From the IMG/VR virus record IMGVR_UViG_3300027793_000052, positions 1-64,000 of that record: a stretch of DNA of 64,000 bases. One strand, 5' to 3'. Positions 12,532-49,830 of this stretch are shown here, piece after piece. The position numbers and the translations under genes were made by a program. The notes beneath the pieces were generated by a model. It saw nothing but the letters and a program-made list of their open reading frames with translations. It was not told where the DNA came from and ran no database searches. Positions within the stretch are counted from its first letter, which is position 1, and each line of letters starts with the position of its first letter.

Positions 12532-12578
12532 TTGACAAGTAATAAACTTTTACTATCTTTGTATCATATTTATTAACA
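12532..12578 (+). promoter_or_regulatory. Composite promoter of tRNA operon 2
   Basis: 47 nt identical to 17274-17320; TTGACA, TATCTTTG, ATATTTAT. Confidence 0.75.
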
Positions 12579-12595
12579 GTAACAGAATTAAACAA

Positions 12596-12688
12596 ATGAA
12601 GACTTTAACAAACATATTATTCGTGATGACACTAACGGTGTTATTTCAGTTTACACAAACTGAACTCGGGTTCTTATGTCTAAGTTAA
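12596..12688 (+). CDS. Leader peptide 2 (MKTLTNILFVMTLTVLFQFTQTELGFLCLS)
   Basis: 22 of 29 non-start codons are Q/F/M/T/V/L, the amino acids of the downstream tRNAs. Confidence 0.8.
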   Translation: MKTLTNILFVMTLTVLFQFTQTELGFLCLS

Positions 12689-12713
12689 TCATTTAATATA
12701 TTAACAAATTTAG

Positions 12714-12748
12714 AAGAACCCGAGAAAAACTCTCGGGTTTTTTTATTT
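12714..12748 (+). terminator. Attenuator terminator, tRNA operon 2
   Basis: AACCCGAGA/TCTCGGGTT plus T run; left arm also pairs perfectly (11 bp) with 12665-12675. Confidence 0.85.
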
Positions 12749-12753
12749 TATAT

Positions 12754-12827
12754 TATCCCGTCGCCTAATTGGCATGGCACTAGATTTTGACTCTAGCATA
12801 GTACAGGTTCGAACCCTGTCGGGATAA
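12754..12827 (+). tRNA. tRNA-Gln(UUG)
   Basis: CTAGA-TTTTGAC-TCTAG; TATCCCG/CGGGATA. Confidence 0.88.
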
Positions 12828-12857
12828 CCGAAGAAGTTATTTGACATATTATATTTT

Positions 12858-12930
12858 GTGGAAGTTACCAAGTTGGTCAAGGTGTTGGTCTGAAAAACCA
12901 ATTATATGAGTTCGATTCTCATCTTCCACA
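12858..12930 (+). tRNA. tRNA-Phe(GAA)
   Basis: TTGGT-CTGAAAA-ACCAA; GTGGAAG/CTTCCAC. Confidence 0.88.
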
Positions 12931-13061
12931 CAACAAGCCGTAGGTATGAATAAGTATATATATATATATATAATATTATTTTAATAACTTATTTAATCAT
13001 TAATTAAAATAATCATCTAAAGTTCGATAATTTTTATCGATATATAATGATATTTATTACT

Positions 13062-13895
13062 ATGAAATGGTATAAAAAAGATATTGAAACATTGATTGAA
13101 TTAATTCGTCAAGGTAACACCTATGATGAAATAGGTGTTATAATGAAAAGAAGTAGATCTTCTATTAAAGCTAAATTATTAAAATTGGGTGAGACATATA
13201 GAAAGTATTCTGAAAACAATTATTATGAAAAGGTTAATTGTAAAAATTGTGGTATAGAATTTAAATCTTTAATGTCTAATAAACAAAAATTTTGTAACCA
13301 TACATGTGCTGCAAGTTATAATAATGTAATTAGAGGTAAAAGAAGTCAAGAAACAAAAAATAAAATAAGTAAATCATTAAAAAGTAAAAAAAAGGAGAAA
13401 TATGATTTAAATCCTAAAAAATGTATGAAATGTGGTGAACATATACCATATAGTAAATGGTGTAATTATAGAAAAAATTGTGACGAATGTAACATTATTA
13501 TTCGTAAAAATATGGGTAGGATTTTAGGTCAAAAAACCTCACAAACCAAAATAAAAAGATCGAAAGACGAGATAAATTTATATGAGTTATGTAAGATGAG
13601 TTTTAACGATGTTGAACATAATAAAATAATAAGTTCTGGATGGGATGCTGATATTGTTATAAATGATTATAAAATACTTATACTATGGAATGGTCCTTGG
13701 CATTATAAACAGTTACCATTAAAAAACCATAGTTTAAATCAAGTACAAACTAGAGATAAAATAAAACAAAAATTGTTTGAAAGTTTAGGTTGGAGAGTTA
13801 TAATATTTGAAGATAGATATTACACACCATATACAGCTTTTGATTATTTAAAAAATATAATTCGGGATATATCTCCCCACTCTCATAAGGTGTAG
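13062..13895 (+). mobile_element. Putative free-standing homing endonuclease (Cys-rich DNA-binding repeats plus Vsr/PD-(D/E)xK-like C-terminus)
   Basis: CKNC...FCNHTC, WDADIV..ILILWNGPWHY, RDKIK..GWRV; inserted inside a tRNA cluster. Confidence 0.6.
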
Positions 13896-13941
13896 AAAGA
13901 GTAATTGGCAACATGTGAGTTCAACTCTCACTATCCCGACA
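13862..13941 (+). ncRNA. Atypical tRNA-like RNA with CAU anticodon loop and no normal D-arm
   Basis: 8-bp TCGGGATA/TATCCCGA stem, CTCATAA loop, GTGAG-TTCAACT-CTCAC T-arm; only ~7 nt between acceptor and anticodon arm. Confidence 0.55.
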
Positions 13942-13985
13942 AAATAATGGTTCGATCTGTTCAAATCAGATATACGGTACTATAT

Positions 13986-14059
13986 TCCGGTGATACTCTG
14001 AAGGTAAGGGTGCTCGCCTTGTAAGCGAGATTTAGTCGGTTCGATCCCGACCACCGGAT
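13986..14059 (+). tRNA. tRNA-Thr(UGU)
   Basis: CTCGC-CTTGTAA-GCGAG; TCCGGTG/CACCGGA. Confidence 0.88.
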
Positions 14060-14064
14060 CAAAA

Positions 14065-14135
14065 GCCCTGATGACGTAATGGTAGCGTACTAATTTTACA
14101 TGTTAGCAGCAAAGGTTCAATTCCTTTTCAGGGCA
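14065..14135 (+). tRNA. tRNA-Val(UAC)
   Basis: CTAAT-TTTACAT-GTTAG; GCCCTGA/TCAGGGC. Confidence 0.8.
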
Positions 14136-14141
14136 CAAAAA

Positions 14142-14218
14142 GCCTTCGTGACGTAATTGGTAACCGTGTTAGTTTTAGAAACTAAATTTTGTGAGTTCAA
14201 ATCTCACCGAAGGCACCA
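14142..14218 (+). tRNA. tRNA-Leu(UAG), short variable loop, CCA encoded
   Basis: TTAGT-TTTAGAA-ACTAA; GCCTTCG/CGAAGGC. Confidence 0.85.
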
Positions 14219-14266
14219 AAAATTTTGATAATAAATAAACTTTTACTATATTTGTATCAACAAAAT

Positions 14267-14340
14267 GTTCCCATGGCGAAATTGGTAAACGCAACGAGTT
14301 TAAGCCTCGTATGTTCTCGGTTCAAATCCGGGTGGGAATA
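14267..14340 (+). tRNA. tRNA-Leu(UAA), short variable loop
   Basis: ACGAG-TTTAAGC-CTCGT; has its own TATATTTG promoter just upstream. Confidence 0.82.
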
Positions 14341-14556
14341 CAAAACATTGACGATATGGCGTGTAGGTGTAACTCGTTATAACACCGAGGGGAACATATG
14401 GTATACGAGAAACCATTGTGGTGTGTCTGAAGGGTCAATGTTGATATGGGGTGAGAATCTTAGTTGGCCACTAAGAAAATATGGAAGGGTGTCGCGTTAC
14501 CCAATCGGCTCAAATCCGATCCACTCCACTTTGGGTTATTTTTTGACCAAAAAATA

Positions 14557-14830
14557 ATGAGTAAGAGATACTCAAGAGTTGGGCTACTGGTCTATATCGC
14601 GTGGCAGTCTAGATGAGTGATGAGACTTTAAACTTCACCCCTTGGGTTAAAGGAGAAACATCGAACTCCTCCATTGTACGGTTGACAGGTTTTTATGTGG
14701 TAAGACACTAATGTAAACTCATAGAATTACCGATTAGAGACAAAGGGCTCTTCTGCAGGTGTTATGAGATGGTTCTCGAAACAGTCAGAGAAACCCGTTA
14801 AAATCTAATCCTCAAAGTAATCTCATTTGG
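14557..14830 (+). ncRNA. Unidentified structured RNA
   Basis: Non-coding and GC-enriched; nested stems AATGAG/CTCATT, GATTAGA/TCTAATC, GGG-CTCT/AGAG-CCC. Confidence 0.4.
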
Positions 14831-14839
14831 GGTAAAAAT

Positions 14840-14941
14840 AGTCAGGTGGCGTAATTGGTAACCGCTATAGGGTTGAGGCGTGCTAACTACCTATATAAAT
14901 TGTTTTTAAACAATGCAGGTTCGAGTCCTGTCCTGACTACA
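14840..14941 (+). ncRNA. tRNA-like RNA, AGTCAGG family copy 1 (aberrant anticodon arm)
   Basis: AGTCAGG/CCTGACT acceptor, CAGGTTCGAGTCCTG T-arm, no 7-nt anticodon loop. Confidence 0.65.
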
Positions 14942-15057
14942 AAAATAAAGACATATGGAATATATATTAGGATTTTTAATTGGTATAAGTATTTTTATTA
15001 TTTTTCATAAACCTATTATTAGAGCTTTAGAAAAATTAATCGACATTATCCAAGAAT

Positions 15058-15160
15058 AGTCAGGTGGTGAAATTGGTAGCCACAGCATATAAGACCATGG
15101 GCGTTGTGTTGAAACCTACTGGGGATTAGATTTACAGGTTCGAGTCCTGTCCTGACTACA
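15058..15160 (+). ncRNA. tRNA-like RNA, AGTCAGG family copy 2
   Basis: Same acceptor and T-arm, unrelated central region. Confidence 0.65.
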
Positions 15161-15384
15161 CGAGTCGAGTTGTGTTCGACTAATGTGCTCCCGCATGATG
15201 GAAGTGGTGTCACACCCACAGGGACCTGAGCCGATTACTTGAATCTAAGTCGGTTGGTTGGTGTACCAGTAACAGGAGGAAGTTAACACACAAGTCCTAA
15301 CCCCTCACGTAAGTGGGTTGCCGCTGAAGCCTCGAGAAGCTATTCGGTATTGGGGACAGTCAGAAATGATTGGGCGAAAATTAT

Positions 15385-15461
15385 AGTCAGGTGGTAGAAT
15401 TGTGATTACACCTTGGGACGAATGTCTAGGAGATACAGGTTCGAATCCTGTCCTGACTACA
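15385..15461 (+). ncRNA. tRNA-like RNA, AGTCAGG family copy 3
   Basis: Same acceptor and T-arm; central hairpin with 4-nt loop. Confidence 0.6.
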
Positions 15462-15492
15462 AGATATTTATAAAAGAGATAGGAGGGATTAC

Positions 15493-15975
15493 ATGGTACT
15501 AATACTTAACGCTGACTACACACCATTAACTGTGGCTAACTTTAAAAGAGCCTACAGATTAGTGTATAAAGGTAAGGCAGAAATAGTGGTTTCTCATGGT
15601 AAAGTTGATGCTGGTATAATATTGGATAAGCCTTCCATAATTAGATTAATTAAATATGTTTACTTTCCATATAAAAAAGTAACCTTATCAAGGTATAACA
15701 TTTATAGAAGGGATGAACATAAGTGTTTATATTGTGGATCCAAAGATAATTTAACGTTAGACCATGTTATACCAAGAAGTAAGGGTGGGCCAAACAGTTG
15801 GACAAACTTGGTGACATGTTGTATGAGATGTAATATGTTAAAGGGTGATAGAACACCTGATGAGGCAGGAATGGTATTATCACATAAACCATTTACACCT
15901 AATTATTTATATTTTATAAACAAAATGCATAAAATACATGAAGAATGGAAACCTTATTTAATGGATGATAAATAA
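15493..15975 (+). CDS. HNH endonuclease (McrA-like)
   Basis: CLYCG..LTLDHVIPRSKGG..WTNLVTCCMRCN; AGGAGG upstream. Confidence 0.85.
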   Translation: MVLILNADYTPLTVANFKRAYRLVYKGKAEIVVSHGKVDAGIILDKPSIIRLIKYVYFPYKKVTLSRYNIYRRDEHKCLYCGSKDNLTLDHVIPRSKGGPNSWTNLVTCCMRCNMLKGDRTPDEAGMVLSHKPFTPNYLYFINKMHKIHEEWKPYLMDDK

Positions 15976-16163
15976 TGGAAGGAAAAGAATTTAAATTTGT
16001 TGAGGGTATAGATTATTACCTAGATAAAGGTAGTATTGTACTTACTGAAGAATATTTAACACGTAGAAAAAAATGCTGTGGCTCTGGTTGCCGACATTGT
16101 CCATTTTGGCCTAGACATACTAAAGGTAATACAGAGTTAAGAGAAAAACCTAAAGAAAATTAA
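15975..16163 (+). CDS. Small Cys-rich protein
   Basis: CCGSGCRHCPF motif. Confidence 0.6.
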   Translation: MEGKEFKFVEGIDYYLDKGSIVLTEEYLTRRKKCCGSGCRHCPFWPRHTKGNTELREKPKEN

Positions 16164-16213
16164 AAAATACTTGACAGGAGATAAAAATTAATATATAATT
16201 GTATCATTAATAT

Positions 16214-16285
16214 CGCGATGAGGGTGTTGGTTCCCCACCGGTCTCATAAACCAGGTCCACGGCCGTTCGATTCGGCCCGTCGCCA
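16214..16285 (+). tRNA. tRNA-Met(CAU), possibly initiator type
   Basis: CTCATAA loop; C1:C72 mismatch in acceptor stem; anticodon stem lacks the usual three G-C pairs. Confidence 0.75.
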
Positions 16286-16382
16286 CTAAGTCCCCTATAG
16301 TATTATAGGGGATTTTTTTTAACATTAAAGACAACTTGACAAATTTAACAATCATAACGATATTTATATAAAAAGATATACC

Positions 16383-16961
16383 ATGAGAAATTTTAACGAA
16401 GACGATTTTAACAATGAATTTGGTGATGACTTTTTTGGTCGTTGGGAACGATTTAATGAACGTATGAAAAACGATAGAGATTTTAGACGTGAAATTAATA
16501 GATTCCAAAAAGATTTTGAAGAAATGATGCGTATGATGTCTAAAAATAAAAAAAATGGCATAAATTTATTTGGTTTAAATGATGATATGAGGTTTATACC
16601 TTTAAACGATTTTAGGACAAATAATTTTGATGGAATGGATATTCCTGAAGATGAAATGGATATTGAAAAAGGTGAGGATGAAAATGGTGAATGGGAAAAA
16701 AGAAATTGGGCATCACCTGACGGTTCTGTTTCTTATACTTCTTTCACACGTTCATCAGGTATTGAGGATTTTGGTGATAAAATATTTGATAGAGATAAAA
16801 ACAGAAATATTTTTGACCCTGAAAAAGAAAAATATTTAAAGTTGGCTAAATTAAAAAAGGCTTTGGATTATTGTGTTGAACAAGAAAAGTATGAAAAAGC
16901 CGCTGAACTTAAAAAAGAAATTGATAAAATAACAGCTTCTTTAAAAAAGAAAGAGGAATAA
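16383..16961 (+). CDS. Hypothetical protein with C-terminal UvrB/UvrC (UVR) motif
   Basis: LKKALDYCVEQEKYEKAAELKKEI. Confidence 0.6.
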   Translation: MRNFNEDDFNNEFGDDFFGRWERFNERMKNDRDFRREINRFQKDFEEMMRMMSKNKKNGINLFGLNDDMRFIPLNDFRTNNFDGMDIPEDEMDIEKGEDENGEWEKRNWASPDGSVSYTSFTRSSGIEDFGDKIFDRDKNRNIFDPEKEKYLKLAKLKKALDYCVEQEKYEKAAELKKEIDKITASLKKKEE

Positions 16962-17030
16962 AAACTATAAGTAATATTTTTTTACTGTTTTTTCTTATAG
17001 TTAATTTTAAATAATCATACATGGACAGTA

Positions 17031-17261
17031 GTGATGAACCGTATAAACAAAGAAAGACTCGCAACCATAAGCTTAATTTTGGCAATGTTCTTCAACCCTC
17101 TAGGGTTCGACGCACTATTCAACGCTGTAATGACATTGACAGGTTCTTATTGGATTACGGATATAATATTTTACCTTATATCACTATCGTTTCTTGGGTT
17201 ATATTTCTTATTACAAGGTATTAACCCAATAAAACACGTAAAAGAAAAAATAAAAAAATAA
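17031..17261 (+). CDS. Small membrane protein
   Basis: Two hydrophobic segments. Confidence 0.5.
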   Translation: MMNRINKERLATISLILAMFFNPLGFDALFNAVMTLTGSYWITDIIFYLISLSFLGLYFLLQGINPIKHVKEKIKK

Positions 17262-17273
17262 TTTAAAAAATAG

Positions 17274-17320
17274 TTGACAAGTAATAAACTTTTACTATCT
17301 TTGTATCATATTTATTAACA
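17274..17320 (+). promoter_or_regulatory. Composite promoter of tRNA operon 3
   Basis: 47 nt identical to 12532-12578. Confidence 0.75.
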
Positions 17321-17338
17321 AACAAAACAATTAAAGAA

Positions 17339-17434
17339 ATGAAAAATTGGCATAACATATCGAGTATACATAGTAATCGAATTAATAGTTCGGTGTACAC
17401 ATGGTGTGTTTTGTCCAATCAAGATAATACTTAA
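17339..17434 (+). CDS. Leader peptide 3 (MKNWHNISSIHSNRINSSVYTWCVLSNQDNT)
   Basis: Codons 3-18 are 16 consecutive N/W/H/I/S/R, the amino acids of the downstream tRNAs. Confidence 0.82.
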   Translation: MKNWHNISSIHSNRINSSVYTWCVLSNQDNT

Positions 17435-17459
17435 TGGGAATTAAGTTTTTTGTACAAGG

Positions 17460-17496
17460 AAAACCCACCACATGAAAATGTCGGTGGGTTTTTTGT
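17460..17496 (+). terminator. Attenuator terminator, tRNA operon 3
   Basis: AAAACCCACC/GGTGGGTTTT plus T run; competing strand at 17401-17412. Confidence 0.8.
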
Positions 17497-17522
17497 TATT
17501 TGACATATTGGTAAATTAAAAT

Positions 17523-17611
17523 GGAGAGTTAAGCAGATGCATTGGAGCGTCGACCAGCTTTGAAACCTGGGTCTCGTTAAGTCGGGTGGGGGTCGGGTCC
17601 TCAGCTCTCCG
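17523..17611 (+). tRNA. tRNA-Ser(UGA)
   Basis: TTTGAAA loop, long variable arm, GGAGAGT/GCTCTCC. Confidence 0.75.
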
Positions 17612-17617
17612 CAAAAT

Positions 17618-17706
17618 GGTGTTAGAGTCGGATATTGGTTAGCCGAGCTTGTCTGTGAAACAAGTGTTCTTTAGTGAACGTGCGGGTTCAATCCCCGTCT
17701 ATCACC
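17618..17706 (+). tRNA. tRNA-His(GUG)
   Basis: CTTGT-CTGTGAA-ACAAG; G-1:C73 pair; enlarged variable region. Confidence 0.8.
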
Positions 17707-17713
17707 CAAATAC

Positions 17714-17788
17714 GGGTCTGTAGTACTAATTGGATAAAACTTTCGGCTGTTAACCGAGATGATGTGAGTTCGAGTCTCACTGGACCCG
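17714..17788 (+). tRNA. tRNA-Asn(GUU) copy 1
   Basis: TTCGG-CTGTTAA-CCGAG. Confidence 0.85.
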
Positions 17789-17795
17789 CTGATTT

Positions 17796-17871
17796 GGACT
17801 GTAAGCTGACAAGGGGTAGCTGTGGCCTGTTAAGCCAAGGGTGGTGGGTTCGATTCCCACACAGTCCGCCA
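17796..17871 (+). tRNA. tRNA-Asn(GUU) copy 2, CCA encoded
   Basis: TGGC-CTGTTAA-GCCA; GGACTGT/ACAGTCC. Confidence 0.85.
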
Positions 17872-17874
17872 AAC

Positions 17875-17946
17875 GGGGGTATAGCTCAGTGGTAGAGCAG
17901 AGAGCTGTTAACTCTAAGGTCGTAGGTTCAATCCCTTCTACCCCCG
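17875..17946 (+). tRNA. tRNA-Asn(GUU) copy 3
   Basis: AGAG-CTGTTAA-CTCT; canonical D-arm. Confidence 0.9.
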
Positions 17947-17953
17947 CAAATAT

Positions 17954-18026
17954 AGTATCGTGTCTGAACGGTTTAGGAACTATCCTGATAAGATAGGAAA
18001 AGTGGGTTCAACTCCCACCGATACTA
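17954..18026 (+). tRNA. tRNA-Ile(GAU)
   Basis: CTATC-CTGATAA-GATAG. Confidence 0.85.
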
Positions 18027-18033
18027 CTAAAAT

Positions 18034-18107
18034 ACATCTGAGACCATATAGGAATTGGTACTGGCTTCCAAACCCAGTTGTTGCAGGTTCGAATCCTGTC
18101 AGATGTG
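18034..18107 (+). tRNA. tRNA-Trp(CCA)
   Basis: TTCCAAA loop; ACATCTG/CAGATGT. Confidence 0.8.
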
Positions 18108-18112
18108 CAAAA

Positions 18113-18202
18113 GGAAGATAGGTAAATATTGGTTTGTTACAGCATCCTGCTAAGATGTCCCGGGTAATACCGGTGAGGGTTCAATTCCCTTGTCTTCCGC
18201 CA
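18113..18202 (+). tRNA. tRNA-Ser(GCU), CCA encoded
   Basis: GCATC-CTGCTAA-GATGT; long variable arm. Confidence 0.88.
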
Positions 18203-18205
18203 AAT

Positions 18206-18293
18206 GGAGAGTTAAGGAAGGGAGTGGTTCCCTCGCTTGTTTGGAAAACAAGAACCCATTAAGTTGGGCACAGTTCGACTCTGTATCTCTCCG
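18206..18293 (+). tRNA. tRNA-Ser(GGA)
   Basis: CTTGT-TTGGAAA-ACAAG; long variable arm. Confidence 0.85.
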
Positions 18294-18303
18294 CTAATAA
18301 CAT

Positions 18304-18375
18304 GGGCGTGTCATATAAGGGTTATTATGCGAAGCTTATACCTTCGTCAAGGTGGCTCAACTCCACCCACGCCTA
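18304..18375 (+). tRNA. tRNA-Ile(UAU)
   Basis: CGAAG-CTTATAC-CTTCG; GGGCGTG/CACGCCT. Confidence 0.78.
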
Positions 18376-18380
18376 CAAAT

Positions 18381-18455
18381 GGTTCCATAGTGTAATTGGA
18401 TAACACGCAAAGCTACGAACTTTGAGACTTGAGGGTTCAAATCCTTCTGGAACTA
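18381..18455 (+). tRNA. tRNA-Arg(ACG)
   Basis: CAAAG-CTACGAA-CTTTG. Confidence 0.88.
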
Positions 18456-18460
18456 CTAAC

Positions 18461-18487
18461 AAACCCACCCCATGGTGGGTTTTTTTA
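18461..18487 (+). terminator. Terminator ending tRNA operon 3
   Basis: AAACCCACC/GGTGGGTTT plus T run. Confidence 0.8.
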
Positions 18488-18522
18488 TTTACATATGCCC
18501 CTAGTTTAAGTATAATTTATAT

Positions 18523-19041
18523 ATGATTAAAAATAGTATTCCTGAACATAGAATGGGTGTACATGTTTCTGTACCGATAGAAGATATTAGACAGAACATG
18601 GATTTTGGTAATATAATCCAACCTAGATGGTTATTAACAATACCACACAATCATGGTTTATATCAGTATTTAGTAAAAACAGATGGTCCATCAGTGGTAA
18701 CAGTTGGTAATATTGATTTTGGTGTACCAAGATTGGAATGGCAACCATTAAAATTAACCGTTGTAAGATGTGATGATTATGACACCACAAATACTATAAC
18801 TTATACCAGTGGTACAATTACATTAGGTGATAGTCCTTTAGATGTAATCAGAAATTGGATGATGAGTTATGAAAAGAAAAATATTAGGTTGGAAAAAATA
18901 AACCATAATGGTTTATGGCATGAAAGGTTTGATATAAGAGGTTCATTTATAACAGAAATGAATCATGAGGTAATTATGGATAGGGAGATCAGTCAAATGG
19001 AGATAACAATAAATTTTGACCATTTACAGTATATATTATGA
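18523..19041 (+). CDS. Divergent T4 gp19-like tail tube paralog
   Basis: EWQPLKLT..VIRNWM..KKNIRLEKINHNG..ERFDIRGSFITE..EITINFD resembles the gp19-type pattern. Confidence 0.45.
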   Translation: MIKNSIPEHRMGVHVSVPIEDIRQNMDFGNIIQPRWLLTIPHNHGLYQYLVKTDGPSVVTVGNIDFGVPRLEWQPLKLTVVRCDDYDTTNTITYTSGTITLGDSPLDVIRNWMMSYEKKNIRLEKINHNGLWHERFDIRGSFITEMNHEVIMDREISQMEITINFDHLQYIL

Positions 19042-19508
19042 AAGAAAAAATTATGAGCAAGGTGTTGAAAAAGATAATAAAAGAATCGTTATTGTTAGAA
19101 TCTATAGATATTTTTGATATAAATAACATACCTTGTGAGTTTAATATACATACTGAAAATAATAATAACATAACAGTAATATTCACACCAAATTCAGAAG
19201 ACTTTTACCAATTAAGTATTGAAATAAAAGATGACGGTTGTTATTATGTTATATTCGGTGTTATTATTGATGATGTAGTTAGAACATCTTTGACTTTAAA
19301 TAGTGATTACAGACTTAAAGTTTTATCTACTGTGTTCTCTTTAATTAAATACTATACAGATAAGTATAACGTTGAATGTTTGGAAATGGATATAGATGAT
19401 GAAATGAGATTAAAATTATATAATCTTTATTTTAGTAAACATTTTAAAAATTTCCAAGTAGATAAGTTAGGTAACAAAGTGAGATTAGTAAAAAATGATA
19501 AACTTTAA
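19038..19508 (+). CDS. Hypothetical protein with KVLKKIIKE leader
   Basis: ORF track; leader motif. Confidence 0.55.
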   Translation: MKEKIMSKVLKKIIKESLLLESIDIFDINNIPCEFNIHTENNNNITVIFTPNSEDFYQLSIEIKDDGCYYVIFGVIIDDVVRTSLTLNSDYRLKVLSTVFSLIKYYTDKYNVECLEMDIDDEMRLKLYNLYFSKHFKNFQVDKLGNKVRLVKNDKL

Positions 19509-19812
19509 TCAATATTTTAAAGAAATTGTTAGACCAATAATTGGTGGGGATATGATAAAGGATGTTATATTGGTTAATAACGCTAAAATTAAAAATATAA
19601 CAATAACGGAAGAAATTGAGTTACAAAAAAATAGTGTAGGTATTGATTTAATTGAGGATTGGACTTTTGATTTTATAGACCTTATTCAAAAAATAGAAAA
19701 AGATTATGGAATCACAATAAAAGATGATGAATATTGTTGTGATAATAACGGTTATTTCACTGTTAAAACTTTTGATGAATTAAATGATATTATAAAAAAT
19801 AAAACATTATGA
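19495..19812 (+). CDS. Acyl-carrier-protein-like protein lacking the DSL serine
   Basis: WTFDFIDLIQKIEKDYGITIKDDE...TFDELNDII aligns to the ACP helix II-IV pattern. Confidence 0.4.
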   Translation: MINFNQYFKEIVRPIIGGDMIKDVILVNNAKIKNITITEEIELQKNSVGIDLIEDWTFDFIDLIQKIEKDYGITIKDDEYCCDNNGYFTVKTFDELNDIIKNKTL

Positions 19813-20081
19813 AAGAAAAAATTATGAGCAAGGTTTTTATAACCTTATTGGTTGTATGGGTGTTTTCGGCAGTTTATTTGTCGATTAATTCAATTTTTGG
19901 TATCTTTATGGATACAAATCCAAATATATCTAAAGCCATATTAGGTTTTAGTTTTTTAGGTATGGTTGGTTCTGGTATCGTTAACAAATTTATTGGTAAC
20001 GATTTAAATAAAATCGGTGAAGATTTAAAACAAAAAGGTTGTAAAACTTGTAAACAAAAGAATAAGAATGGGAATGTTTGA
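19809..20081 (+). CDS. Membrane protein
   Basis: Two TM segments; C-terminal CKTC. Confidence 0.55.
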   Translation: MKEKIMSKVFITLLVVWVFSAVYLSINSIFGIFMDTNPNISKAILGFSFLGMVGSGIVNKFIGNDLNKIGEDLKQKGCKTCKQKNKNGNV

Positions 20082-20541
20082 TTATCTTAATGTTGACATC
20101 AATATTCTACCTGATTTAACAGAAGAAGAAAGGGTTAAATTAGGTGGTAATAATATTGATTGGCAAACAAAACATTTTGAATGTGAAATGACCCATGTTT
20201 ATATTGTTGAGGATACAGAAAATAAATTTAGACATTCATTCTTAAAAAACAGAACACCTTATAAATTACAAATAAAAAGATTTGATTGGGAAGAGGTACC
20301 AAAAGAAGAAAGACCGTACCCAAATGCTGATGAAAATTCTTTTGAACACCTTCTAGGTTCTTTTAGGGAAATTAATGTAAGAGTTGAAGATTTAGATTAT
20401 ACAGGAACTTTTACTTTCTATACTTATATAAAACCAGAAGATGAGGGGATTGGTGATGTTAAAAAGTTAAAATGGGTTGAGTTTATTTGTGAAGTTGAAA
20501 ATGGTAAAATAATTTCAATAAAGCGGTTGACAGATGAATAA
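20068..20541 (+). CDS. Hypothetical phage protein
   Basis: ORF track. Confidence 0.55.
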   Translation: MGMFDYLNVDINILPDLTEEERVKLGGNNIDWQTKHFECEMTHVYIVEDTENKFRHSFLKNRTPYKLQIKRFDWEEVPKEERPYPNADENSFEHLLGSFREINVRVEDLDYTGTFTFYTYIKPEDEGIGDVKKLKWVEFICEVENGKIISIKRLTDE

Positions 20542-20760
20542 TAATCCTTATATTTGTATAAGAAATAAAAATACATAACATAAATTTAACATAAGCGTTG
20601 ACAAATAAATAAAACTTTATTAATTTTGTCCATATTTATTTATAGAAGTTGTGGTTCTGATGGGTTTCAGGAACCACCCCAAAAAAGACAGATACAGAAC
20701 GGGGACTGTTTACAACGAAAACCCCACAAAAAAAACTATAAACAAATTAAAACTAAAAAA

Positions 20761-20868
20761 ATGAGAAAGAATTACACATATCAACCGAGTACACCGAAAG
20801 CAGGGAAAGTAGCCGATAAAGGCTGTGATACCTTGAATGGTTGTGGTATGTACAATTCTGTCTCATAA
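20761..20868 (+). CDS. Leader peptide 4 (MRKNYTYQPSTPKAGKVADKGCDTLNGCGMYNSVS)
   Basis: 11 of 12 codons in PKAGKVADKGCD are from the Y/P/D/G/A/C/K set of downstream tRNAs. Confidence 0.78.
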   Translation: MRKNYTYQPSTPKAGKVADKGCDTLNGCGMYNSVS

Positions 20869-20892
20869 GAATATATAGAGAAGAGTTTAAAT

Positions 20893-20930
20893 AACCCCCA
20901 CAACCGATAAAAAAGTTGTGGGGGTTTTTG
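20893..20930 (+). terminator. Attenuator terminator, tRNA operon 4
   Basis: AACCCCCACAAC/GTTGTGGGGGTT plus T run; competing GGTTGTGG at 20839-20846. Confidence 0.85.
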
Positions 20931-20943
20931 TTTATAGTTATAC

Positions 20944-21025
20944 CCGTAAGTTGAACAGGTGGTGAGTTCCGTTGACTGTAGATCAACCGTTTTAAACTGT
21001 GGGGGTTCGATTCCCTCCTTACGGA
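20944..21025 (+). tRNA. tRNA-Tyr(GUA)
   Basis: GTTGA-CTGTAGA-TCAAC; variable arm. Confidence 0.85.
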
Positions 21026-21045
21026 CAAAAACGTTCATTGAAAAT

Positions 21046-21169
21046 AAAAAGAATAGAAGCGGTGGTATTGGTTACATCGATAATGGATATCAATTTGACA
21101 GCAAATCAAACGTTGTGGGTTCGAGTCCCATGATAAAAAACACCGATATTTTTATTCTCTGTTCTTTTT
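21046..21169 (+). ncRNA. tRNA-Cys-like body closed by a Y-like stem
   Basis: GAAGCGGT-N8-TTACATC motif, D-like hairpin, TTTGA-CAGCAAA-TCAAA, GTGGG-TTCGAGT-CCCAT; no normal acceptor stem. Confidence 0.55.
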
Positions 21170-21175
21170 AAATAT

Positions 21176-21254
21176 ATGGGGTTGGAGGAGTCAGGTTTTC
21201 CTCGCTTGGTTTGGGACCAAGAGACTTGCGTGGGTTCAAATCCCACACCCCATA
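21176..21254 (+). tRNA. tRNA-Pro(UGG)
   Basis: CTTGG-TTTGGGA-CCAAG. Confidence 0.82.
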
Positions 21255-21260
21255 CAAAAC

Positions 21261-21338
21261 GGATACGGCGCATAACGGCTGGTGTACCTGACTGTCTATC
21301 AGGTTTTAAGAGGGTTCGACTCCCTTCGTATCCGCCAA
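21261..21338 (+). tRNA. tRNA-Asp(GUC), CCA encoded
   Basis: CCTGA-CTGTCTA-TCAGG. Confidence 0.88.
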
Positions 21339-21340
21339 TG

Positions 21341-21410
21341 CGGGATTAGCATAAAGTTAATGTACTAGTCTTCCAAACTAGTGAAGTCGGATAGTTACCG
21401 GCATCCCGCT
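21341..21410 (+). tRNA. tRNA-Gly(UCC)
   Basis: CTAGT-CTTCCAA-ACTAG; GCGGGAT/ATCCCGC, U73; non-canonical T-loop. Confidence 0.78.
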
Positions 21411-21420
21411 CTAAAATTAT

Positions 21421-21495
21421 GGGCTACATCCCGAAGGCAGGGCACTTGATTTGCACTCAAGTGAAAACGGTAGGGTTCGATTCCCTCGTGGTCCA
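21421..21495 (+). tRNA. tRNA-Ala(UGC)
   Basis: CTTGA-TTTGCAC-TCAAG; G3-U70. Confidence 0.85.
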
Positions 21496-21509
21496 CAAAT
21501 ATAATAAAA

Positions 21510-21600
21510 GGGTCTGTGGTGTGAGTGGTTTAAACCACCTGTCTGCAAAACAGGGATGACAATTAATTTTGTTACGTCAGTTCGAATCTGACCAGACCCT
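21510..21600 (+). tRNA. tRNA-Cys(GCA) with long variable arm
   Basis: CCTGT-CTGCAAA-ACAGG; U73. Confidence 0.82.
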
Positions 21601-21612
21601 CTAAAAAATAAA

Positions 21613-21687
21613 GACCTCGTAACTTAGTTGGTTTAAAGTGCTAATCTTTTAAATTAGAAATCGTGAGTTCGAATCTCACCGGGGTCA
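21613..21687 (+). tRNA. tRNA-Lys(UUU)
   Basis: CTAAT-CTTTTAA-ATTAG. Confidence 0.88.
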
Positions 21688-21688
21688 C

Positions 21689-35546: not shown

Positions 35547-36149
35547 ATGGATATCGTAAAAATTATGTTACTTGGTAGCGGTTACGATGTAACGAGAGGC
35601 ATTGTCACAAAGAAGAATTACAAAAAAATTAAAAATTCTTCAACTCTCGATAATGTATGGATTAAAAAGTTAGGAAAAAAAATAGAAAAAAATTTTACAG
35701 GATTTAAAACAGAATTTAATGATTATGGAATATCAAAAGGTGATTTAATAATAGAAGTAAACGGCGAAGAATTTGTAAATATACCAATAAGTGTTTTAGA
35801 AGATTATACATTTAATAATGTTGAACTAATGGAATTGGAAGGGTATCAATATCCTTCAACAGATGGTGTTGTTGTAACGTCTGTACAAGAATTATATGGT
35901 GTTTTTATGGATGTAATATTTGTAACTTCTGAAAAATTTGATGTCACAAAGTTTAAATTTATTAAAAAAGAAATACAAGACGAAAAAGAAGAAACTTTAT
36001 TTAATTTAATTTCTGAAGTTTACTATGATGAAGAGTTAATTAAATTTGAGGGTGATAACACAGATTTACGTATGTCAAATGTTAACTTTGATATAGGTAA
36101 AAAAGAAAAAGTTTCAAAAAATGAAAAAGACGATAATAGACAACTTTAG
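35547..36149 (+). CDS. Hypothetical protein
   Basis: ORF track. Confidence 0.5.
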   Translation: MDIVKIMLLGSGYDVTRGIVTKKNYKKIKNSSTLDNVWIKKLGKKIEKNFTGFKTEFNDYGISKGDLIIEVNGEEFVNIPISVLEDYTFNNVELMELEGYQYPSTDGVVVTSVQELYGVFMDVIFVTSEKFDVTKFKFIKKEIQDEKEETLFNLISEVYYDEELIKFEGDNTDLRMSNVNFDIGKKEKVSKNEKDDNRQL

Positions 36150-36348
36150 GATTAACGATAACGTTTTAATAACAAGTTTTAACCCACCTTTGGAGGGTAG
36201 AATAGCTGACATGTATGAAATGGAACCAAATATGATTGGTGATCCTACTTTAACAAAAATGTATCCTAAAATGGTACCAATTATTGAGGTGATATTGAAA
36301 GACGGTAAGTTACGTTCTTTTGTGAAAGATGTTGTAAAAAAGGTTTAA
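36121..36348 (+). CDS. Hypothetical protein
   Basis: ORF track. Confidence 0.45.
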   Translation: MKKTIIDNFRINDNVLITSFNPPLEGRIADMYEMEPNMIGDPTLTKMYPKMVPIIEVILKDGKLRSFVKDVVKKV

Positions 36349-36350
36349 AT

Positions 36351-36442
36351 CTTTCGTTTATGGGTTTCATACAACTTCAATATATTCGTTTAGTGTTACT
36401 TTAACCGCTGTAGATACCTTTCGTTTATGGGTTTCATACAAC
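36351..36442. CRISPR. CRISPR-like mini-array A (1 full and 1 truncated 36-nt repeat, 31-nt spacer) overlapping an ORF 3' end
   Basis: GCTGTAGATACCTTTCGTTTATGGGTTTCATACAAC at 36407-36442; identical 25-nt part at 36351-36375; 32/36 identical to the array B repeat. Confidence 0.5.
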
Positions 36443-37347
36443 ATACGCACGCAGATTTTCTGAAATTCTGGGTATTCTACCCCCATTTCTTTACATTTTA
36501 ACCATATTTTATCATAATCTGCATATAAAACCGGTTTCTGATCACCAGTATCTATGTTATCTAAAAATAAAAAATCCCCATTTTTATCAATATATTTTGT
36601 CCATCCTGGTTGTTTTTCTGATTCTACCAATTCACAATCCATTAATTTTTCCATAATAAACCCCTCACATGGGGATAATTCCGGAACATCATTAACCCAA
36701 TCAAATTCTTCTTCGTTTTCTTTTAACCCTTTTTTACTTTTCATTAAGTTCTTTAAAACGTAAGAACCGGCTGATAATGATATACCCATCATAAGTTCAT
36801 CTAAGTTATCAACACTAAAACCTTTTTCTGATGCAATATCTTTTAAAGTATTTAAAATCGGAACTGACATAAAAGTAAAAGACAACACATCAATTAAAGT
36901 TGTTATAGTAACACCAATCTTCATACCTATAGTTTTAAATAAATTAATACTGGCATTCATAAATTTGACAACGCCCTTTAACTCTTCATTTAGTTTACGT
37001 TTTTTTAATTCAGAAATTAATTTTTTTAAATCTTCTTTGGACTTAGATGTCAAAATGTAAACTGCTGTCATAACCAAAAGTGTTGCATCATATTCGGTTA
37101 TGTTTATGTTTTTATTATGTAATAATTCTATAACAGGCCCAGAAAAAGCACTAATACCTAAACCATAAGTTAACATAAAGTCAGCATTGATTTTCATATC
37201 GTTAATAACTTTTTTAATTATAGGTTTACTACTTGGTATACCACCACTACCTTCATTAATTATTTTTTCATACATCATGTGAACTTGACCTTCCATGTAC
37301 ACACGTTCAGTTAATAAGTTTAACGATAATTTTGATAAGTTACTCAT
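36367..37347 (-). CDS. Two-module protein: membrane module plus array-associated module ending in repeat/spacer-coded peptide
   Basis: LKENEEEFDW junction; C-terminal module paralogous to 48217-48675. Confidence 0.65.
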   Translation of the reverse strand: MSNLSKLSLNLLTERVYMEGQVHMMYEKIINEGSGGIPSSKPIIKKVINDMKINADFMLTYGLGISAFSGPVIELLHNKNINITEYDATLLVMTAVYILTSKSKEDLKKLISELKKRKLNEELKGVVKFMNASINLFKTIGMKIGVTITTLIDVLSFTFMSVPILNTLKDIASEKGFSVDNLDELMMGISLSAGSYVLKNLMKSKKGLKENEEEFDWVNDVPELSPCEGFIMEKLMDCELVESEKQPGWTKYIDKNGDFLFLDNIDTGDQKPVLYADYDKIWLKCKEMGVEYPEFQKICVRMLYETHKRKVSTAVKVTLNEYIEVV

Positions 37348-37415: not shown

Positions 37416-38078
37416 ATGAAAAAAGTCATAAGATTAAATGAAAATGATATTGAAAAATTGGTTAAAAAAATCATCAGAGAAGGTGAAACCAGTTACATGA
37501 ATGATCACGAAGCTAATACATATATGTTTTGGCAAAACCTTGAAACCATTAAACATGCCGCAGAGGAAATTTTGGAGATGGACAGGGAAAAAATAAATGA
37601 AATTTTAGCAGATGGTCATGCTTGGGCCATGGACCATATTGCGACTTCAGCTGATGATGTTGAAGAAGTATATCATTTTTTGGAAGGTCGTGAAGATGAT
37701 TATGAAAAACATGAACACAAGGAAGAAGAAGAGGAGGAGGAAGAATATGGGCAATATATGGAATCCATCAAAGGTAGAATAATTCATGCTGACGAATTTG
37801 GCTTCACAGAGTTATTACCAATAAATGAAGGTAAAGGTAAAGGGGCTTGTGCAAACAGAGATTTAAATAAACCTTGGTTAACACCTGATGGACCTAAAAA
37901 ACGTTCTGTTTGTGTTAAAAACGCTTCAGGAAATGTGGTTAAAGTTAATTTTGGTGACCCTAATATGAGAATTAAAAAATCAAACCCTGAAAGAAGAAAA
38001 TCTTTTAGAGCTAGACATAAATGTGAGAATCCAGGACCAAAGTGGCGTGCACGCTATTGGTCGTGTAAGTTTTGGTGA
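37416..38078 (+). CDS. Conserved phage protein with leader motif
   Basis: LVKKIIRE; VNFGDPNMRIKKSNPERRKSFRARHKC..RYWSC. Confidence 0.6.
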   Translation: MKKVIRLNENDIEKLVKKIIREGETSYMNDHEANTYMFWQNLETIKHAAEEILEMDREKINEILADGHAWAMDHIATSADDVEEVYHFLEGREDDYEKHEHKEEEEEEEEYGQYMESIKGRIIHADEFGFTELLPINEGKGKGACANRDLNKPWLTPDGPKKRSVCVKNASGNVVKVNFGDPNMRIKKSNPERRKSFRARHKCENPGPKWRARYWSCKFW

Positions 38079-38959
38079 TACAACCCAATACCCCTATAAG
38101 ATTTTAACTTACCCTTAATAACTTTAGTTATATTTGACCTATCTAGATTATTTTCTTTACAAAATTTAGATAGGTCATTTTTTAATATATCTATGACTAA
38201 TTTTTTACCCATATCATAAAGTTTCACCATTTCAACATTTAAAACATCGTATTCTTGACATTTTGTTAAAATTTCATCATCAGTTTGTTGGGTGTCTAAA
38301 AAACAATAATAACCATTATGTCTTTTAATATTTTTAGTATGACCTCTTAGTGTGTTAACAAAAAAATGTATTTTCAAATTATTTTGTTGACAAAAATCCC
38401 CCAAATTTTTAATCCTCAAAATATTATTTTTTCCATCAACTAAAATCCAACTTTTTGATTTGTTTTTATTTTGTTCAATTAATCTGGGCCCGTTTTTTTG
38501 ACTTATCTTATTTTTATGTTCTTCGGTAAATTTTTTACCTTTGTTGTATCCTATGAATTTGACTTTAATTTTTTCCTTATAATCATTACTGTTTAAAGTT
38601 TTTTGCCATTTTTCAGATTTTTTTAAACCTTCAGAAATTCTATTAGATAAATCTTCAGATATTATTCTATTTTTCTGACCACCTCCTAAAACATTATACC
38701 CATTAGGTGTTAGTGAGTTATGTTCATTTATCCAATAGATTTCCTTTTTATCTAACTCATCAATCGATGAAGCCTCATCAATCACTTCCCATTCAAAATT
38801 ATCTATACCATATTTTTTTATTGCATTTAAAAATGGTCTATCATTTTTATCATTTTTCGATTCTTTTAGGTGTCCACTAATTCTTTTATCTAAACCCCTT
38901 ATGGTCTGACCTATGTAAACTTTCCCATTTATTTTATTTTTAACCATATAAATTACCAT
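38054..38959 (-). mobile_element. GIY-YIG homing endonuclease with NUMOD-like repeats
   Basis: VIYMVKNKINGKVYIGQT...GYNV; KGKKFTEEHKNKIS. Confidence 0.88.
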
Positions 38960-47715: not shown

Positions 47716-48138
47716 ATGGAAAAATTAAAAGTAGGTGATTTCGTTTCTTGTTTCTATAGTTTTAGAACTGGTACCGCTTACGGTAAAGTTTTAAAAATAC
47801 ATGATTTAAAAAATAATATAGATTGTGATGAATACGGTCCTATTATTACAGGTATGGGTGATGAGAATAGTAAACTTAAAGTAACCGTAAAAATATTAGG
47901 TTATGATATGGGTGAAGATTACGGTATTAACAGTTTAGGTGAAATTGTTGAAGATGTTGAAGAGACTAGGGAGTTGGATGTACATAAAATTTTCTACATT
48001 ATAGATGAGAAACTAATTCGTGAAATGAGAATTGAGTGGGAGAATTTAATGAAAAAGAAGTTAGATTTCTTATATAAAAACATTAATAGGGATGTTTTGT
48101 CAGGCAGAAAAACCATCAAAGGGTTAAATATGACTTAA
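47716..48138 (+). CDS. Hypothetical protein
   Basis: ORF track. Confidence 0.5.
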   Translation: MEKLKVGDFVSCFYSFRTGTAYGKVLKIHDLKNNIDCDEYGPIITGMGDENSKLKVTVKILGYDMGEDYGINSLGEIVEDVEETRELDVHKIFYIIDEKLIREMRIEWENLMKKKLDFLYKNINRDVLSGRKTIKGLNMT

Positions 48139-48141
48139 TAA

Positions 48142-48367
48142 ACCTTTCGTTTATGGGTCTCCCACAACCAAGGTTTAAAAAGGGATCTTAAAAAATGGAC
48201 TGTAGACACCTTTCGTTTATGGGTCTCCCACAACAAACTTGCGGTGGAGTGGGGAGTTAAATTTAGCTGTAGACACCTTTCGTTTATGGGTCTCCCACAA
48301 CAGTTCATCAACCGTACCGTCAATTGGTGAAGCTGTAGACACCTTTCGTTTATGGGTCTCCCACAAC
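48142..48367. CRISPR. CRISPR-like mini-array B: 3 full and 1 truncated 36-nt repeats, spacers of 30/31/30 nt
   Basis: GCTGTAGACACCTTTCGTTTATGGGTCTCCCACAAC at 48199, 48266, 48332 and partial at 48142; unique spacers; repeat can fold into a hairpin; no cas gene seen. Confidence 0.65.
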
Positions 48368-48675
48368 ATATTAACACATATTTTCTGAAATTCTGGGTAA
48401 GAAACCCCCATTTTTTGACATTTTTTCCAGATTTTACCATAATCAACATATAAAACCGGTTTCTGATCACCAGTATCTATATTATCTAAAAATAAAAAAT
48501 CCCCATTTTTATCAATATATTTTGTCCATCCTGGTTGTTTTTTTGATCCTACCAAGTTACATTCTGATAATTTATCATAAATAAATTTTTCTGCCTCAGA
48601 TAATTCTGGAATATCATCAAACCAATCTAAATTTTCTATGGATTCTTTTAATATTTTTTTAATTAAATTCCTCAT
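48217..48675 (-). CDS. Leader-bearing protein reading in frame into array B
   Basis: MRNLIKKILKE; LWETHKRKVSTA occurs twice, encoded by the repeats. Confidence 0.65.
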   Translation of the reverse strand: MRNLIKKILKESIENLDWFDDIPELSEAEKFIYDKLSECNLVGSKKQPGWTKYIDKNGDFLFLDNIDTGDQKPVLYVDYGKIWKKCQKMGVSYPEFQKICVNMLWETHKRKVSTASPIDGTVDELLWETHKRKVSTAKFNSPLHRKFVVGDP

Positions 48676-48732: not shown

Positions 48733-49251
48733 ATGGAAAATTTAGTATTAAAAGGTAAAATAATATTTGATCCTGAAAACAGAACCAGGAAACACAACCG
48801 TCAGGCTGATTGGAAACGTATTGCCATGGTTCATTTTGATGGTGAGATGTGTGATTATTATGCTTGGTTTATTGAACGTAGATATAATATAAAACTAAAT
48901 AAACCACTTAGAGGTTCACACATTACCTTTATTAATGATAGTACTAAGGACCTGACTAAGAATTTTACAATACCCGTCAAAGTTATTAATGACAATTGGT
49001 CTAAACTTAAAGATAAGTGGGATGGTAAAGAAATAGAAGTTACTTTAAACCTAGATTTACGTTCCAACGGGGAACATTGGTGGATGAAAGTTCATTCACA
49101 ATCATTCGAGGATATTAGAACCGAAATAGAATTAGGTAGACCTTTCTTTAACTATCACATGACTATTGGTTATGCTAATGAACGTAATATAGAACATTCT
49201 GAATATATTGTTGGTCTCATAGATAAATTTGGTAATAATTATGGTATATAA
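48733..49251 (+). CDS. 2H phosphoesterase-family protein
   Basis: Two HxT motifs: SHITF and YHMTI. Confidence 0.65.
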   Translation: MENLVLKGKIIFDPENRTRKHNRQADWKRIAMVHFDGEMCDYYAWFIERRYNIKLNKPLRGSHITFINDSTKDLTKNFTIPVKVINDNWSKLKDKWDGKEIEVTLNLDLRSNGEHWWMKVHSQSFEDIRTEIELGRPFFNYHMTIGYANERNIEHSEYIVGLIDKFGNNYGI

Positions 49252-49278: not shown

Positions 49279-49830
49279 ATGAAAATTATAGAAACTAAAA
49301 TAAAAGATTTGGTTATCATTAAACCAAAAGTTTTTAAAGATGACAGAGGTCATTTTCTTGAAACTTATAATCAAACCGTGTTTGAAAAATTGGGCATAAA
49401 TTTCGGTGACTTTCACCAAGACAATCAATCTTTATCTAAAAAAGGTGTATTAAGAGGTTTACACTTTCAAAAGGGTGAACACGCCCAAGCCAAATTGGTT
49501 AGAGTTATAAAAGGTTCAGTTTTAGATGTGGCGGTTGACCTGAGAGAAGGTTCACCAACTTACGGTGAATGGAAATCTGTTTTGTTAACTAGTGATAATA
49601 ATGTTATGTTTTTTATACCGGAAGGTTTTGCACATGGATTTATTACACTAGAAGATGATACAATATTTAGTTACAAATGTAATAAACCTTACAACAAAGA
49701 ATTTGAATCCGGTATTTTGTGGAATGATCCTGATTTAAACATAGATTGGATGTTATACGGTGATGAACCAATAATGTCAGGAAAAGACCTAACTTTACCA
49801 ACCCTTGAGGAATTAAATCAAAACTTATAA
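49279..49830 (+). CDS. rfbC: dTDP-4-dehydrorhamnose 3,5-epimerase
   Basis: VFKDDRGHF, QDNQSLS..GVLRGLHFQ, QAKLVRV, PEGFAHGF. Confidence 0.95.
   Translation: MKIIETKIKDLVIIKPKVFKDDRGHFLETYNQTVFEKLGINFGDFHQDNQSLSKKGVLRGLHFQKGEHAQAKLVRVIKGSVLDVAVDLREGSPTYGEWKSVLLTSDNNVMFFIPEGFAHGFITLEDDTIFSYKCNKPYNKEFESGILWNDPDLNIDWMLYGDEPIMSGKDLTLPTLEELNQNL

Follow-up and report, generated by a model that had tools for sequence, protein, structure and literature searches.

Viruses that carry short CRISPR arrays and no cas genes are established, as are compact arrays in huge phages, and some of these arrays hold spacers derived from host chromosomes (PMC6858448; PMC11656645; PMC7162821). Two loci of this kind, A and B, are described here from the first 64 kb (64,000 nucleotides, hereafter the window) of IMG/VR virus record IMGVR_UViG_3300027793_000052, which is 317,983 bp long with 30% G+C and is 96% complete (CheckV). 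In both loci the array is fused to the 3′ end of an open reading frame (ORF) encoding a conserved protein domain, the module, and they are a new variant among virus-borne CRISPR mini-arrays. They are CRISPR-type mini-arrays without cas genes, carried by a jumbo phage and probably served in trans by the Cas proteins of its host. As part of this best explanation the phage is T4-like and its host a freshwater member of the Bacteroidota; the large terminase is nearest to those of T4-like Flavobacterium phages at ~30% identity, and the phage was found in many freshwater metagenomes from 2017 to 2024 and in several metatranscriptome libraries.

Virus-borne mini-arrays hold one to a few spacers in viruses without cas genes, presumably depend on host adaptation and interference proteins and differ in spacer content between close relatives (Medvedeva et al., 2019, PMC6858448; PMC11656645), all of which holds for the present loci. 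Their repeats are identical to those of the host, whereas for the present repeats a search of 185,579 species genomes gave no host match. Likewise, their spacers mostly target related viruses, whereas inter-phage targeting was not seen here, with none of 44 spacers matching ~760 kb of related phage genomes; the four spacers of the window, which were those taken into searches outside this phage group, match only the phage itself in IMG/VR and nothing among cultured phages. Here, by contrast, one spacer hits a bacterial chromosomal gene, and both leader and first repeat lie inside a conserved coding gene. The arrays of huge phages (Al-Shayeb et al., 2020, PMC7162821) are similar in being compact arrays of jumbo phages that lack adaptation and interference genes, with a spacer matching co-sampled bacteria, but the present loci differ in having an ORF fusion, many dispersed or tandem one-gene-one-array units and a dedicated protein family. 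As with RNA anti-CRISPRs and solitary repeat units (PMC11656645) the phage-borne repeats could tie up host Cas proteins, although here every locus has one to four real spacers with turnover rather than lone repeats, and no host repeat that they would mimic was found. In the literature, coverage of which was incomplete, no report was found of a conserved protein-coding gene whose 3′ end contains the leader and first repeat of an array, of a dedicated one-gene-one-array protein family or of many such units per genome.

The module gene and its fused array

The earlier note on this DNA described locus A as a module ending in a repeat, followed by a 31-nt spacer and a truncated repeat that supplies the TGA, and coordinates and reading frame confirm this. 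The stop (36367-36369) lies in repeat copy 2 as GTT GTA TGA, the ORF tail (VKVTLNEYIEVV and stop) being encoded by spacer A1 and repeat copy 2 and the last structured residues by repeat 1. In locus B the ORF extends across the first two repeat-spacer units and terminates in repeat 3, after a frame shift caused by the 31-nt spacer B2. The module of locus A is 73% identical in amino acid sequence to the locus B protein, and over the last 254 nt the DNA of leader plus repeat 1 is 87% identical to 48332-48585 of locus B. Alignment also bears out that the repeats of the two loci differ at four of 36 positions (6, 7, 10 and 28) and that copies within one locus are identical over their overlap, with base 48199 as the sole exception. 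A 25-nt repeat core occurs six times in the window (two copies at locus A and four at locus B) compared to 0.00 expected from shuffles, and a scan of all 318 kb of the genome found no CRISPR-like locus beyond A and B.

The same note argued from two instances for a system rather than an accident, and the gene-plus-array unit is indeed recurrent. A module-only homology search recovered 23 proteins, all ending in ...ML(Y/W)ETHKRKVxT, several of which visibly continue into a second copy. A downstream array was present at 17/17 viral-contig loci recovered through protein homology alone and, conversely, each array found in those contigs by repeat pattern had before it a module ORF whose reading frame continues into the first repeat. 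Altogether the viral contigs hold 26 distinct arrays and 44 unique spacers, one to four at each locus, with lengths of 28 nt (one), 29 nt (five), 30 nt (32), 31 nt (five) and 32 nt (one); one 122-kb partial genome has seven arrays, and tandem module-array-module-array units exist. When 1.8 billion cluster representatives were searched with a profile, 160 hits were obtained, and in most of those listed the domain sits at or close to the C-terminus. The C-terminal motifs of distant subfamilies are quite different (e.g., LEEDYKLKGFTP, VEDHFKMREATP and MWETLKLKDITP), with a second identical copy exactly 22 residues on in at least 25 of 149 cluster representatives, a lower bound that includes distant subfamilies. 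Where the DNA of distant subfamily members was examined, all five had 36-nt repeats on a 66-nt period in an array fused to the ORF, one of them on a 262-kb phage contig, and the leader-repeat junction (TGCGTGCGTAT followed by G) is retained in distant loci too. Homologues lacking a downstream repeat, which as a majority would have told against a system, were sought and amount to a few ENA relatives in which the array is eroded or missing.

The structure model of the locus B module has a pLDDT (predicted local distance difference test) of 87, rising above 94 over residues 25-115, and comprises a helix, four strands and two helices, with the repeat-coded residues completing the final helix. No match for the module was found in Pfam or PHROGs, and its neighbours in PDB (by sequence and fold), AFDB and ESM Atlas are uncharacterised viral proteins only. 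In relatives the module is joined to other N-terminal parts in proteins of 246-522 amino acids (aa). At locus A the N-terminal ~195 residues fused to it contain one hydrophobic stretch (~residues 144-165), and residues 1-195 have no family match.

The repeat can be drawn as a hairpin that pairs it end to end, with 91% of cells paired across 28 repeat variants compared to 25-50% in slid registers, the paired ends being GUUG/CAGC, GCUG/CAGC or, in one contig (L024), GUUG/CAAC. No CRISPR-DR or other family in Rfam matches it. Its codons are invariant and non-preferred for a genome of 30% G+C (ACC in 24/24, CGA in 25/26 and AAG in 24/25), which points to selection on the nucleotide sequence besides that on the protein. 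As modelled, the module is a real folded protein whose C-terminus would be under constraint at the DNA level too.

Gain, loss and origin of spacers

An ENA contig is 100% identical to locus B over ~640 nt save for one clean 133-nt (66+67) indel, corresponding to the two ORF-proximal repeat-spacer units, such that the oldest spacer alone remains with repeat B3 as the first repeat of this one-spacer allele. Repeat collapse is unlikely because the contig comes from a k=141 assembly and the repeats are 36 nt. Related phages have distal spacers in common and differ in extra ones at the ORF-proximal end, and homologous loci sometimes hold wholly different spacers. Spacers of 28-32 nt, each with a 36-nt repeat copy, are gained at the ORF-proximal repeat, distal units are lost or degraded and spacer turnover is fast relative to point mutation. 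The indel and the extra ORF-proximal spacers of relatives support the proposal, made at first from the homogeneity of repeats within each locus, of local repeat duplication on insertion as in CRISPR adaptation; as the machinery that inserts the spacers we infer host Cas1-Cas2. In every array the final third of the far-end repeat is degenerate; read in the frame of the gene, this repeat gives a stop within 9-12 codons in 18/26 arrays, so that it looks like the original gene end. In terminal repeat A this frame hits TAA at 36345-36347, and in terminal repeat B it reads ...KRKVY followed by TAA at 48135-48137, in each case with a 2-nt overlap with the stop of the convergent gene. At some loci the ORF-embedded first repeat is unlike the mutually identical downstream repeats, e.g., GACCC compared to GGTTC in three copies (L019/L032 vs. 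L044; L016), suggesting that paralogous loci have undergone gene conversion or recombined with each other since a spacer was last gained.

When contigs of four sequencing runs were placed along locus B, loose ends revealed other contigs with exactly spacer B1 or exactly spacer B2 between unrelated flanks, in three runs that also contain the phage (a DNA run and RNA libraries). Searching for the B2 junction pattern led to a 36.9-kb metagenome contig (L045), whose phytoene desaturase gene (crtI) carries the protospacer (30/31) at codon 231 and stands among genes named from their translations as a sigma factor, phytoene synthase-like, ispH-like and folE-like (GTP cyclohydrolase I). This is a bacterial chromosomal context, and at least some of the spacers are copies of sequence from a bacterial chromosome that occurs in the same samples. 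This crtI has its nearest genome relatives among Bacteroidota, at ~65% protein identity at best, which means that the genome collection does not include the species; the bacterium is presumably the host of the phage. The window + strand of B2 is the sense strand of crtI, such that any transcript made in the ORF sense would be complementary to crtI mRNA. On average the spacers have 38% ± 1.9 G+C, compared to 30% in the phages and 34.5% in the bacterial contig, and no protospacer adjacent motif is common to the two protospacer contexts. Spacer A1 has no match elsewhere in the genome or in the viral contigs, and searches of the genome, the viral contigs and IMG/VR found none for spacer B3.

The loci have the generic properties of CRISPR in their 36-nt direct repeats, unique spacers of 28-32 nt, polarised gain, degenerate far-end repeat and protospacers. 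What they lack, besides cas genes, is a non-coding AT-rich leader, the region upstream of repeat 1 being the coding 3′ part of a conserved gene.

Probable service by host Cas proteins and the alternatives

No Cas1, Cas9, Cas13a or Cas13b was found by profile in the 96%-complete genome, the Cas13b search having been validated on positive controls, and the sole match to a Cas9 model is a weak HNH fragment (15679-15996, see below). Motif and domain scans of the genome revealed no TnpB/Cas12f-like domain and no dual-HEPN ORF. In a PADLOC analysis of the 72 ORFs with 350 aa or more, the matches listed (25 of 54 matched families) were to SNF2-type helicases only, and there was no strong Cas hit. Related partial viral records were likewise without Cas1 (five searched) and without Cas9 or Cas13b (four searched). 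Since these profile, domain, dual-HEPN and PADLOC searches found none, a phage-encoded effector or integrase was rejected.

An ENA contig of a related phage (L147) has a 420-aa TnpB/Cas12f-like gene (7310-8572, +; OrfB_IS605 and TNB domains) directly upstream of three tandem modules and, 8 kb away, a second ORF with a weak HTH_OrfB_IS605 match adjoining a 444-aa ORF without a family hit. A link between TnpB and the module was set aside as incidental because the TnpB-like gene is absent from the genome of the window.

For comparison, 401 Bacteroidota genomes were searched for 36/30 arrays with GTTG...ACAAC repeats, which were found in three. In the first (G326) the array adjoins Cas13b, a membrane accessory gene and a non-coding leader, the second (G130) also has Cas13b, while in the third (G120) an array with a II-C repeat adjoins Cas9 and a putative Cas1 read by eye. 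The phage repeats share with these arrays the 36-nt length, the spacer length, the paired GTTG..ACA(A/G)C ends and an inner CCC/GG stem, and score 11-20 against the II-C repeat of G120. In published type VI-B arrays the repeat measures 36 nt and has GUUG/CAAC ends, and the spacers measure 30 nt (10.1101/092577, Smargon 2016 preprint). The resemblance of the phage loci to type VI-B (Cas13b) arrays extends to the 36-nt repeat, 30-nt spacers and 66-nt unit, to base-paired ends (GUUG.../...ACA(A/G)C) that enclose an inner CCC/GG(G/U) stem and to the tolerance of self-derived spacers, and transcription from leader to array would match the ORF sense. Unlike them, the phage has no Cas13b and its leader is coding, whereas the bacterial leader examined is non-coding. 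The repeat most resembles, weakly, those of Bacteroidota types VI-B and II-C, and the loci resemble Bacteroidota class 2 arrays without being filed as VI-B.

The explanation through host Cas proteins would work as follows. The last ~70 codons of the module gene would act as leader and its last 12 codons as first repeat, where Cas1-Cas2 supplied by the host would insert spacers in trans. A host integrase is proposed because the phage has no Cas1 and because in Flavobacterium columnare the II-C Cas1-Cas2 fills the 36-nt arrays of both II-C and VI-B (PMC8092290, Hoikkala 2021). Self spacers enter the VI-B array of that bacterium with roughly the frequency of phage spacers (PMC8092290). The array would be transcribed as the 3′ part of the module mRNA, and in several relatives a terminator hairpin with a T-run directly follows the terminal repeat. 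The resulting guide RNAs would occupy or redirect a class 2 effector of the host, Cas13b or Cas9, such that its use against the phage would be blunted or it would be turned on host transcripts or DNA.

Several observations weigh against this explanation. A degenerate repeat pattern is unmatched in the species genomes searched, a collection that does not include the putative host (best crtI identity 65%), and service by the host is as such a matter of inference. The phage repeats are only 18-22/36 identical to those of the Cas13b genomes G326 and G130, compared to 14.4 ± 2.4 for a shuffled-middle control, and both of their orientations score alike against VI-B repeats. In the ORF sense the repeat loop (AUAAACGAAA) is A-rich, and U-rich on the opposite strand only, whereas VI-B loops are U-rich. 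Covariation in the hairpin is not significant, though pairing is kept across the 28 variants. The repeat sequence also varies greatly between subfamilies, which is awkward if every repeat must fit a host effector. Of the 44 spacers one has an identified target gene and one more a protospacer contig, and the flanks of B1 suggest, from one open frame over 90 nt, a polarity opposite to that of B2, which is a poor fit to simple mRNA targeting by one strand. In the RNA libraries the one place where contig cover breaks is the divergent promoter region that lies upstream of the module; these contigs are unstranded and are no proof of one transcript or of its processing.

A first alternative, which we regard as unlikely, is that the 3′ end of the gene mimics the host leader-repeat junction, with host Cas1-Cas2 mis-integrating mostly host DNA and no function for the phage. 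Such 'neo-CRISPR' loci reportedly form spontaneously through off-target integration by Cas1-Cas2 (Nivala and colleagues, 2018), and like them the phage loci show spacer insertion duplicating a repeat-length target outside a canonical array. A phage without cas genes, an identified spacer that comes from an ordinary host gene, random spacer-coded protein tails, arrays eroded or absent in some relatives and a terminal repeat that resembles the original gene end with its own stop would all be expected of a by-product. Unlike a neo-CRISPR, however, the site here is conserved, expanded and DNA-constrained across a large phage gene family, the fusion of ORF and array having been retained across deeply diverged subfamilies while the repeat sequence changes. 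Moreover, the repeat codons are rare and frozen, indicating selection on the DNA sequence, partial genomes carry an expanded set of five to seven arrays and nearly every member has at least one spacer.

It is similarly improbable that the phage has a self-contained system in which the module protein partners its own array, binding repeat RNA or DNA, marking the integration site or chaperoning guides, without canonical host Cas proteins. The strict association of one gene with one array over at least 160 sequence clusters, the basic C-terminus (HKRKV), a fold without known relatives and the failure to find a matching host repeat in the 185,579 species genomes are all consistent with it. The co-evolution of repeat and protein C-terminus also fits, but is expected anyway, the repeat being inside the coding sequence. 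The ~90-residue alpha/beta domain, moreover, has no nuclease or integrase features, and the 36+30 ruler equals that of Bacteroidota II-C/VI-B arrays, both those found here and those published (10.1101/092577; PMC8092290). More doubtful than the explanation through host Cas proteins, too, is the idea that module protein and array form one self-referential device, in which the protein, its C-terminus encoded by the very DNA of the first repeat and its transcript shared with the guides, would recognise its own repeat as RNA or DNA and, in capturing spacers or loading guides, would enlist host factors or take their place. If true, CRISPR-type adaptation would have an accessory, or even a core component, that was previously unknown and is spread through jumbo phages.

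That the loci are not CRISPR at all, being a tandem duplication of the gene 3′ end or else a protein whose C-terminus has 22-residue repeats with variable inserts, can for practical purposes be dismissed, for although the lengths of the repeat and of most spacers are divisible by three and the ORF reads through at least one unit, the spacers are mutually unrelated, one copies a bacterial gene, 11/26 ORFs end in the first spacer, 12/44 spacers break the frame and in-frame stops are not depleted (15/44 spacers in the ORF frame compared to 12 and 27 in the other two). A reading of the tails as protein repeats or as hypervariable was rejected on the same counts of stops and of ORFs ending in spacer 1, which indicate that spacer-coded tails are not under selection; under service by host Cas proteins they would be an unselected side effect.

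Setting of the arrays and implications

The features of both loci are given in Table 1. It had been noticed that the truncated repeat abuts the stop of a convergent gene at both loci, and this is so, the + strand ORFs ending at 36348 and 48138, 2-3 nt from the last matching repeat base. The arrangement is peculiar to this genome and not general among relatives, where the array is followed by a co-directional gene or a terminator hairpin. The convergent ORF at array A has no family match.

Table 1. Coordinates of the two gene-fused mini-arrays and adjoining ORFs in the window
Feature	Position	Strand	Remarks
Locus A ORF	36367..37347	-	326 aa; C-terminal ~115 aa are the module, paralogous to the locus B protein
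Coding 'leader', locus A	36443..36660	-	Module 3′ region immediately upstream of repeat 1
Repeat A1	36407..36442	-	Full 36 nt, GTTGTATGAAACCCATAAACGAAAGGTATCTACAGC; in-frame translation LYETHKRKVSTA
Spacer A1	36376..36406	-	31 nt
Terminal degenerate repeat A	36340..36375	-	25 nt kept (36351-36375), divergent after
Convergent ORF at array A	36121..36348	+	75 aa; stop abuts array A
Locus B as a whole	48133-48675	-	Paralogue of A; three full repeats, spacers of 30/31/30 nt, degenerate fourth repeat
Locus B ORF	48217..48675	-	152 aa; module is residues 1-115
Repeat B1	48332..48367	-	GTTGTGGGAGACCCATAAACGAAAGGTGTCTACAGC; codes LWETHKRKVSTA
Spacer B1	48302..48331	-	30 nt; absent from ENA allele
Repeat B2	48266..48301	-	Identical to B1
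Spacer B2	48235..48265	-	31 nt; crtI match 30/31; absent from ENA allele
Repeat B3	48199..48234	-	One change, last base C>T at 48199
Spacer B3	48169..48198	-	30 nt; oldest
Terminal degenerate repeat B	48133..48168	-	31/36 kept
Convergent ORF at array B	47716..48138	+	140 aa; abuts array B

Beside locus B lie an ORF (48733-49251, +) with a weak match to 2H phosphoesterases (PF22547, below cut-off; PHROG 12204, 1e-17) and another (49279-49830, +) that by eye resembles dTDP-4-dehydrorhamnose 3,5-epimerase. Between the array loci a 301-aa ORF (38054-38959, -) has a GIY-YIG-like N-terminus (VYIGQT...) and, again by eye, resembles a homing endonuclease. The window has 22 tRNA genes clustered at 2410-21688, among which a promoter-like element of the Bacteroidota -33/-7 type, TTGACA...TAnnTTTG (repeat families D5 and D7), is scattered; the HNH-domain fragment at 15679-15996 (+), with its internal TAA, lies within this region and is probably a decayed homing endonuclease. 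A shared ~11-residue peptide leader, M(K/R)xLIKKILKE, starts 15 otherwise unrelated ORFs genome-wide, six of them in the window (6264, 8063, 11853, 19053, 39472 and 48675 on the - strand) and nine elsewhere, and in many cases a DFxW(A/V)xD motif comes after it (repeat families D3, D6 and D8-D11). We presume that this peptide might be a shared targeting or cleavage signal, LKE fitting the L/I-x-E site of the prohead protease of a T4-like phage. Outside the window, the large terminase ORF (126549-129704, +) encodes 1052 aa and matches other terminases in two pieces over about half its length, suggesting a large insertion such as an intein or inserted domain.

Leaders are usually taken as non-coding, while in these loci integration signals coexist with the C-terminal helix of a protein. 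A coding leader narrows down what an integrase has to read, and array-finding programs in which coding sequence is masked may overlook loci of this kind. Recent capture of spacers by a lytic jumbo phage in lakes is recorded in the loci and, as this phage is present in runs dated 2017 to 2024, could be tracked through time. At least one spacer presumably derives from the host, which gives a direct link to the host of an uncultured phage and makes it possible that host Cas effectors are loaded by phages with guides acting as decoys or against the host. The module family, with at least 160 sequence clusters and no known fold relative, is as such a candidate new player in CRISPR biology.

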